Assembly (NCBI GenBank): GCA_039096225.1
Contig: JBBPEB010000003.1
Span: forward strand, 434,001-498,000
Source: Blastocystis sp. Blastoise
Lineage: Eukaryota; Protista; Bigyra: Opalinata
Length of the DNA stretch: 64,000 nt
Reading direction: 5' to 3'
The position numbers and the translations under genes were made by a program. Below the pieces are notes generated by a model. It did no database searches, was not told the DNA's origin, and saw nothing but the letters and a program-made list of their open reading frames with translations. Each line of letters opens with the position of its first letter. The first letter of the stretch is position 1. This document shows, piece by piece, positions 18,663-20,335 of this stretch.

Positions 18663-20335
18663 ATGAAGTTTATATTTGTTTTAGTATTCATTTTTACATT
18701 TGCATTTGCAAATGTTGACTCTATTGAGGGAGGCAAGAAGGTTTTAGTTATCACCAGTGATAATTCTGCTGAAGCTACTTATTCTATCTATTTTGATGGC
18801 TTAAGAAAGAAAGGATTTGATCTTAAAATTGCTTTAGAGAATAAAAAAGTTACTTTTTCTAAATATGGAAAATTCCTTTATGATCAAGTTATTATATTTG
18901 CTCCTGAATCTGAACAATTATGTAATATAAGTGCTGAAGACTTCAGAAAGTTCTTTGAACATGGAGGTGATGTTGTATTAGCTCTTAGTAATAATCCCTC
19001 GAAGCTTGTTCGTACTGTTGCTGGTGATTTTGGTGTTGATATTGAAGAGAATGGTTCTAAAGTTATAGATCATTTTAATTATGCCACTACGTCTGATAAT
19101 CTTGATCATCAATTAGTTTACACTACACAAATTGCTAATATTAAGCCTCTTGTAGGTAAAATACAAGATTCTAGTCGTGTTTATTATAAAGGTACTGGAT
19201 TAGTTGTTATTGATAATATTTTTATGATTAATACTCTTGTTGGTGAACAATCTACATATTCTGTTAATAACAATAGTGAAATTACCGTATGTTTTTATTT
19301 CAAATTAATTTTATTTTTAAAAATAATTTTGTTTATTTAATAATTATATAAATATATAGTCTACGGGTAAGGATACAGTGATGGTTGTTTCTGTTCAAGG
19401 ACGTAATAATGCTCGTGTTTCTCTTTTTGGTAGTATAGAAATGTTTAGTAATCAATATTCTTTCTTTGTCGATAGTATAAATGCTGCTTTTGTGAAACAT
19501 GTTACTTTCTGGACCTTCCGTCAACGTGGTATTCTTCGTTATCATGATGTCAGTCATAAACATGTAGATAATACGCCTTTAGAAATCATGCTTAAAAATC
19601 ATCAACGACCTAATCTACCTATCTCTCAGTATAATTCTATTTATAGTCTAGTTTTTTATTATTATTTATATGATTATTATTTTTTCTATTTTATTTTTAT
19701 AAATTTTATTTTAATTTTATTTTGTCTATTTTATTTTAATTTTATTTTGTCTATTTTATTTTTCTTGCGATGATGAAATAAGCACATATGTATGATCTCC
19801 GTGATTCTACTGCTTATGCCAAAGAACCCAAAATTTTGGTCTCTTAGGGCAAGAATTTTAATCTATTTTTTTTCTATTTTTTTTACGATTTGATTTTGTG
19901 ATCATTATATATAATAAAATAATATAGTATATATAAAGAAAATTGAAATTGATGAAAGTTTAAAAGGGATATATTTATTATTATATAATAAATATAAATG
20001 ATAACCTATTCATACTGCCTGATTCATTTTCTTATATATATATATATATTTGTGTATATAATATAAAGACAATAGAAATATGACGATAATTATTTGATGA
20101 CGCTAAATAATGATAGTATAATTCATACTGTCTGATTTCTTTTTGTCTTATATTATGTATAGTATTATTATATAAATGAATAGATGCGATGATGAAATAA
20201 GCACATATGTATGATCTTTATGATTCTACTGCTTATGCCAAAGAACCCAAAATTTTGGTCTCTTAGGGCTTCTATTCATAATTTTTATTGATTTTATTAT
20301 TATTATGATTTTGAATTTTTAAAATTTTATTTTAT

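Follow-up and report, generated by a model that had tools for sequence, protein, structure and literature searches.

Two near-identical intronic elements of Blastocystis as probable copies of a conserved box C/D snoRNA with a degenerate D box

Intron 2 of an OST48-like gene in the window (the whole 64,000-nt stretch analysed here) contains two near-identical 85-nt elements, A and A′. The explanation we favour, with some reserve, is that they are copies of a lineage-conserved, intron-encoded box C/D snoRNA whose D box has degenerated in this genome. That they are box C/D snoRNAs by descent and architecture, and not a new class, appears close to certain from comparison of their sequences with those of relatives. 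The first-pass annotation had seen in them an unrecognised hybrid of C/D-type and Sm-type features; this is unsupported, since the orthologous RNAs are canonical box C/D snoRNAs with CUGA where the window copies have CUUA. A candidate “new RNA class” is thereby removed, and in its place stands an orphan C/D snoRNA that is conserved in a lineage of gut protists on which little work has been done. The G of the D box is normally essential, and both copies keep signs of selection although they have lost it. If the RNA is expressed, it would provide a natural test of how far a snoRNP tolerates D-box degeneracy.

The repeated element and its predicted fold

The two copies make up one direct-repeat family. 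They agree at 82 of 85 positions (96%), and the three differences are adjacent (element positions 34-36, CCG versus TTA). The pair was recovered as first described by repeat search, by BLAST against the whole genome (33.3 Mb, 34 contigs), which gives a copy number of two, and by a covariance search with a model built from the two copies and their flanks. The one further product of that search, a weak match on C26, was rejected as a snoRNA copy because a short coding exon lies there. An exact 20-mer of the 3′ domain has no match in the metagenome or genome contigs searched.

Table 1 Positions of the two elements, their parts and their surroundings, in window coordinates
Feature	Position	Copy 2	Strand	Remarks
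Host intron 2, OST48-like gene	19629-20421		+	GT...CA if collinear with relatives
Copy 1 (A) of snoRNA, 85 nt	19766-19850		+	homologous to relatives' canonical C/D snoRNAs
Copy 2 (A′) of snoRNA		20185-20269	+	repeat search, BLAST, covariance search
Copy 1 terminal/external stem, 5′ strand UUCUUGC	19762-19768		+	fold; outer 4-5 nt beyond repeat
Copy 1 terminal/external stem, 3′ strand GCAAGAA	19849-19855		+	fold, flank pairing, covariation
Copy 2 terminal/external stem, 5′ strand AUAGAUGC		20180-20187	+	fold, flank pairing; sequence unlike copy 1
Copy 2 terminal/external stem, 3′ strand GCUUCUAU		20268-20275	+	fold, flank pairing
C box AUGAUGA	19770-19776	20189-20195	+	invariant in window and in relatives' upstream copy
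D′-guide position AAUAAGCACAUAUGU	19777-19791		+	14/15 conserved with relatives
D′ box AUGA	19792-19795	20211-20214	+	relatives CUGA; first base covaries with C′
C′ box GUGAUUC (copy 2 AUGAUUC)	19801-19807	20220-20226	+	relatives AGGAUGG
3′ domain, hairpin P3, contains Sm-like AAUUUUGG	19819-19848		+	apical CCAA/UUGG conserved
Predicted antisense to own SSU rRNA 1228-1252	19823-19846		+	alignment and shuffles; relatives without it
D-box position, CUUA	19843-19846	20262-20265	+	relatives CUGA
Neighbour B, canonical C/D snoRNA	19941-20029		+	D guide UUCAUACUGC and CUGA; long external stem
Neighbour B′, SNORD41-like C/D snoRNA, 24 bits	20074-20140		+	guide antisense to LSU 2923-2932

The predicted fold of each copy has a terminal stem and two hairpins, P2 (element positions 13-52) and P3 (positions 54-83), and leaves GAUGAUGAA single-stranded. 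The terminal stem consists mostly of sequence outside the repeat; the copies differ there, yet both are complementary. The run of flank pairs is 5 in copy 1 and 7 in copy 2, and a run of at least 5 is reached at ~1.2% of AT-rich sites. The element has 40% GC, against 8% for the intron around the four snoRNA units; the whole window has 20% GC, and the organism's own SSU rRNA (2,023 nt) has 32%.

The motifs reported at the outset, AUGAUGA, an internal AUGA...RUGAUUC, a 7-bp pairing of the guide arms and AAUUUUGG, are all present. Both copies carry a C box of the form RUGAUGA near the 5′ end, and an internal D′/C′ pair is found in both lineages, as AUGA with RUGAUUC in the window and CUGA with AGGAUGG in relatives. 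The 5′ part of the D′ guide (19778-19784) pairs with 19811-19817 in the 7-bp AUAAGCA/UGCUUAU of P2, and the three inter-copy differences (19799-19801) lie in the D′-C′ spacer and at the purine in the first position of C′. The loop of P3 is AAUU in the window and UUUG in relatives.

We prefer a K-loop reading of the internal motif to a U4-type K-turn at the apex of P2, because the change G36A in copy 2 would break the pair that closes the latter. Inspection also led us to reject a hammerhead ribozyme (UGAUGA in a three-way junction), which would need a GAAA strand that is missing here; moreover, A stands at the equivalent of C3, and stem II makes no contact to the core.

Orthologs and the host intron in relatives

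The nearest relative found, P0151, came from a search with exon 3 of the OST48-like host gene (77% amino-acid identity); the members of its cluster come from gut-metagenome contigs and one NCBI assembly (GCA_019973095.1). The majority of public relatives of the gene are more distant. The first-pass annotation had proposed looking for the element in OST48 introns of relatives by covariance search, and it is there: the relatives' OST48 intron, at the same position and phase, holds homologs scoring 39-52 bits in cmsearch. With the window-derived model, 25 matches were obtained in these introns, at 27-52 bits and E values of 1e-10 to 5e-4; the score of 27 bits belongs to a decayed copy (r10), and L059 is the contig with the decayed copy. 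A protein search with exon 1 found no relatives of the host gene, the metagenome loci L011-L037 hold no element homolog and are distant (27-33% exon 1 identity where exon 1 was compared), the P0001 OST48-like gene has no intron at the corresponding place, and exact ORF matches were absent from other isolates.

The RNA of the relatives is a canonical box C/D snoRNA, with C box AUGAUGA, a 15-nt guide, D′ box CUGA, C′ box AGGAUGG and D box CUGA, closed by a terminal stem GGAGAAC/GUUCUC. In the same alignment columns both window copies have AUGA as D′ and CUUA as D. The copies in the orthologous intron are thus canonical family members to which the element is homologous. Window and relatives' copies are 74-76% identical, and the two copies are 94-96% identical inside each lineage; the element identity of up to 76% persists despite a base composition of ~40% GC in the relatives' contig and ~20% GC in the window.

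The arrangement of the intron is also shared. Relatives have A, a SNORD41-like snoRNA and A′ (usually two A copies), and the window has A-B-B′-A′. B and B′ are SNORD41-like, with a common guide UUCAUACUGY followed by CUGA and with flank stems like those of the A copies, and in relatives the two A copies enclose an ortholog of B whose guide is the same. The relatives' upstream copy is identical in 12 contigs, and their downstream A′ mostly has a C box AUGAGGA (L049:3693-3978 and the same region of L050-L060). The relatives' two copies seem to be under unequal constraint, unlike those of the window.

As the first-pass annotation had also proposed, the element was compared with Rfam, and it matched no family at the gathering score (best 20 bits). 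The 15 weak matches of the element alone are all snoRNA families, 14 of them box C/D; their scores come from the stem, the C box and the D′/C′ positions. The relatives' copy gives a weak full-length match to plant snoR30/Z108 (RF00046; 19 bits, E 0.14). Where this copy has CCGAACCC/AGAACCC, antisense to the GGGUUCG site of 18S, the snoR30/Z108 consensus reads AAUCGAACC. The match is, however, far under the family's gathering score (60), there is no relation between the D′ guides and the window copies do not match; the literature offered nothing useful on this resemblance, and we regarded it as too weak to use. The window's only Rfam match at the gathering score is a tRNA gene (53191-53262, minus strand).

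The host gene is OST48-like by the Pfam domains OST48_N and OST48_MD on the relatives; the exons of the host protein were searched separately. Comparison with the relatives also exposed a host intron in which CA replaces the conserved AG acceptor: where their sequence is tttctAG|TTATCCTGAA, that of the window is tttctCA|TTATCCTGAG (20414-20432). A good donor, ca|GTATAA (19629), has the phase seen in relatives, and a junction collinear with theirs (LPIS-HYPEPE) requires a GT...CA intron. Joining the donor at 19629 to the nearest AG (20430-31) leads to a stop, and the in-phase alternative, cat|GTAGAT (19564) with the AG at 20431, would lose ~26 residues. The near-repeat AT[C/T]TCTCA is present at both junctions. 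Just upstream of the OST48 gene lies an intact ORF of 361 aa (17211-18296, plus strand), which from its translation we take to be a Tc1/mariner-type transposase.

Covariation and the altered D box

A model-based alignment of the window copies with those of relatives shows compensatory double changes at all seven pairs of the terminal stem. The covariation score of this stem is 0.210, compared with 0.088±0.012 in shuffles (0 of 500 reach it), and 91% of its cells are paired; sliding the partners lowers this share to 33-48%. The first base of D′ and its partner in C′ (alignment columns 37-54) are A-U in the window and C-G in relatives. One lower pair of P3 differs in the same manner, A-U in the window and C-G in relatives, and its U in the window is the D-box base that has changed. 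Neither the lower stem of P2 nor the apical stem of P3 varies across the alignment, and covariation therefore argues neither for nor against them.

Copy-to-copy variation is concentrated in the D′-C′ spacer in both lineages. The restriction of differences to the loop had been taken as a sign of structural selection, and the differences themselves are as described; however, three substitutions side by side may have arisen in one mutational event and are weak evidence alone, and it is the comparative data that supply the evidence. Composition, the compensated stems and the compensated K-loop together argue that the element is probably still under selection. The shared A-B-A′ order and the identity of copies within each lineage suggest an old duplication homogenised by gene conversion; the alternative is an independent duplication in each lineage.

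The absence of a CUGA D box, already remarked on in the first description, is confirmed in this genome. CTGA does not occur within or near either window copy, the D position reads CUUA, and the last 30 nt of the element contain a single GA dinucleotide, at position 59-60. Neither copy thus has a CUGA near its 3′ end to form a terminal K-turn with box C, and we file both as D-box-degenerate variants for this reason; because CUUA replaces the CUGA of the orthologs, they are members of the class by descent only. Two unpaired G lie between the D position and the stem in the window, and one in relatives.

The change from CUGA to CUUA would swap the second sheared A-G pair of the terminal K-turn for A-U. 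Tolerance of such a pair depends on context: Kt-23 of Thermus thermophilus 16S rRNA is a natural K-turn with A-U at that position (2b-2n) and still folds, whereas Kt-7 loses its ion-induced folding when the same G is changed to U (PMC2790904). The terminal motif predicted for the window resembles Kt-23 in its A-U at 2b-2n; unlike Kt-23, its 3b-3n pair would be U-U, and two extra G stand between motif and stem.

It is conceivable that both copies are decaying C/D pseudogenes, in which the D-box G-to-U change killed snoRNP assembly and whose likeness comes from gene conversion or a recent duplication. In this genome a dead sequence would be expected to drift towards AT, and the element instead stays at its high GC content within the 8% GC intron and retains all the blocks conserved with relatives. 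Both copies do have CUUA at a position whose G is normally essential, neither guide has a target in the RNAs scanned (see below), and the downstream copy of the relatives is drifting (AUGAGGA in most; r10 decayed). The equivalent change in Kt-7, which blocks folding, points the same way (PMC2790904). However, each window copy has its own distinct complementary external stem (joint chance about 1e-4), C′ has changed to compensate for D′, and the inter-copy differences are confined to the K-loop spacer, and we regard decay of both copies as unlikely.

If the copies are instead D-box-degenerate snoRNAs, as we favour, A, the SNORD41-like B and B′, and A′ would form a small cluster in one OST48 intron. 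We think it likely that the RNA is still made, with stem folding, Snu13-type binding and exonuclease trimming. The intron flanks would pair into a stem, as for the neighbouring canonical snoRNAs, and bring the C box beside CUUA; Snu13-type proteins would bind the internal D′/C′ K-loop and perhaps also a weakened terminal K-turn with A-U for the second sheared A-G; and exonucleases would trim the RNA to ~85 nt. Such an RNA resembles the intron-encoded box C/D clusters of plants and many protists in its C box, its D′/C′ boxes and its covarying terminal stem, in its sense-intronic place beside a SNORD41-like snoRNA with external stems, and in having orthologs with CUGA. It differs from them in the CUUA of the window, in guide regions that are mutually paired (the 7-bp P2), in that no canonical target was found, and in matching no Rfam family at the gathering score.

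Guides, 18S complementarity and competing readings

Neither guide forms an anchored duplex of at least 10 Watson-Crick pairs in the organism's own pre-rRNA, U2, U4, U6, U4atac or U6atac; the longest in the pre-rRNA and these five snRNAs have 8 pairs. In the RNAs scanned there is accordingly no stretch of at least 10 nt beside D or D′ that is complementary to rRNA or snRNA. The complement of the D′ guide is in no excess over the control genome-wide (236/215 vs 313/235), and bipartite guides with the hairpin excised gave no target. Judged by the canonical rule, the RNA is therefore an orphan, since these searches gave it no methylation target.

These results bear on the reading of the element as a conventional 2′-O-methylation guide, in which the D′ guide AAUAAGCACAUAYGU would have a target outside the RNAs scanned, such as U1, U5, U11, U12, tRNA, 5S or mRNA. 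The guide is conserved at 14 of 15 positions between the lineages, its length (15 nt) and spacing are canonical, and so are the relatives' boxes. However, with anchored duplexes of at most 8 pairs, no genome-wide excess of its complement, and half of its length locked in the invariant 7-bp P2, we consider a conventional guide improbable.

A different kind of complementarity is found in the 3′ domain. Element positions 58-81 are antisense to the own SSU rRNA at 1228-1252, in a duplex of 10 perfect bp, one bulged target C and 7 bp including 2 G-U, followed by weaker pairing; the block adjoins neither the D nor the D′ box. We adopted an alignment-type score because RNAduplex, applied to long RNAs, gave meaningless loop-rich duplexes and an inflated null. 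The loop-penalising score is 31.0, against 21.9±2.4 in shuffles, of which 1 in 500 reaches it; without the D position, 4 of 300 shuffles do. Duplex energy alone is marginal (-31.1 versus a shuffle mean of -25.9 and minimum of -32.7). Among pre-rRNA, host pre-mRNA and snRNAs this is the single significant antisense, for any part of the element, and complementarity to host pre-mRNA, U4, U6, U4atac, U6atac and U2 is at shuffle level.

The pairing with 18S had been put forward as one option by the first-pass annotation, and the SSU string quoted there occurs exactly in the own SSU at 1228-1251. That much of the option stands, but the match is absent from the relatives' version (CCGAACCCAA, CCAAACCGAACCCAA), which scores 17 at SSU 1228-1252 with the organism's own SSU as proxy for the relatives' rRNA. 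The best site of that version, by the same proxy, is the other UUGGGUUC, at SSU 425-449, and is not significant (35-46/300). As a predicted pairing, the match at 1228-1252 is real in the own SSU, lineage-specific and not conserved. We place the site in the helix 25/26 region of 18S, on the 3′ strand and a little upstream of helix 27.

We suggest, tentatively, that base pairing rather than canonical methylation could be the mode of action. The conserved GAACCCAA block, lengthened to 24 nt in this lineage, would pair with 18S UUGGGUUC (SSU 1228-1252), and the snoRNA would have a folding or accessory-pairing role at this site. U14 domain A, U3, U8, U13/snR45 and snR4 are non-methylating C/D snoRNAs with long antisense elements; they keep canonical D boxes, and their pairings are conserved. 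The window element resembles them in its ~17-24-nt bulged 18S antisense that does not lie beside D or D′, and differs in that its predicted pairing at SSU 1228-1252 is confined to a single lineage. A functional C/D-derived snoRNP with the D-box G-to-U change, retargeted to 18S as a non-methylating folding factor, is a rather doubtful extension of this idea. In such a snoRNP the terminal motif would be a K-turn that has an A-U pair, like Kt-23, or a three-way junction in its place, and a few substitutions with a 2-nt deletion would have produced the 24-nt antisense. With no canonical target in either lineage and a long 18S antisense in one, the RNA could illustrate a change of target or a shift from guide to chaperone.

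The first-pass annotation further considered a hybrid RNA bound by Snu13 and Sm. In such an RNP Snu13 would sit on the K-loop, and a ring of Sm or LSm proteins on AAUUUUGG. This motif does fit the Sm consensus, relatives keep a U-rich AAUUUGUUGG at the same place, and the internal K-loop, UAUGAUC...GUGA, matches the K-turn of the organism's own U4atac. The motif occupies the D-guide region, however, inside a self-complementary CCAAAAUUUUGG with conserved CCAA/UUGG arms. The element is also sense-intronic, with processing stems, unlike the stand-alone capped genes of U2, U4 and U4atac, and it matches no snRNA family in Rfam at E<=10. These observations leave the hybrid unsupported and make it most improbable.

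The last option, a divergent U4atac-like snRNA or spliced-leader RNA, is refuted: UACUGCUUAUGCC has a loose likeness to stem I of U4atac, the element contains GUAUGA and the genome has a minor spliceosome (U6atac, 63.8 bits), but the element matches no snRNA or SL family in Rfam at E<=10, exists in two copies only, both intronic, has orthologs with C and D boxes, and does not pair with U6atac as the genuine U4atac does. Compared with antisense U6atac, it matches at best 8 of 9 bases, in an unrelated place, and it lacks the stem I/II pairing of U4atac.

The organism's own U2 (142 bits), U4 (96 bits), U6 (94 bits), U4atac and U6atac are separate loci. The genuine U4atac (135 nt; G000:C8:151033-151167, minus strand; L042:1501-1635) scores 29.7 bits against an Rfam cut-off of 53, and has an Sm site, a stem I and a K-turn stem-loop. 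Over 12+3 bases its 5′ end agrees with the antisense of the U6atac stem II strand, and U6atac lies at C21:544821-544937, complementary to the stem II strand of this U4atac. Standard annotation would half miss the minor spliceosome in this AT-rich gut protist. Elsewhere in the genome, G000:C9:20439-32820 contains organellar-type SSU matches (525 bits) in opposite orientations, one of them adjoined by an LSU match of 872 bits, which suggests that C9 is an organelle genome with a large inverted repeat.
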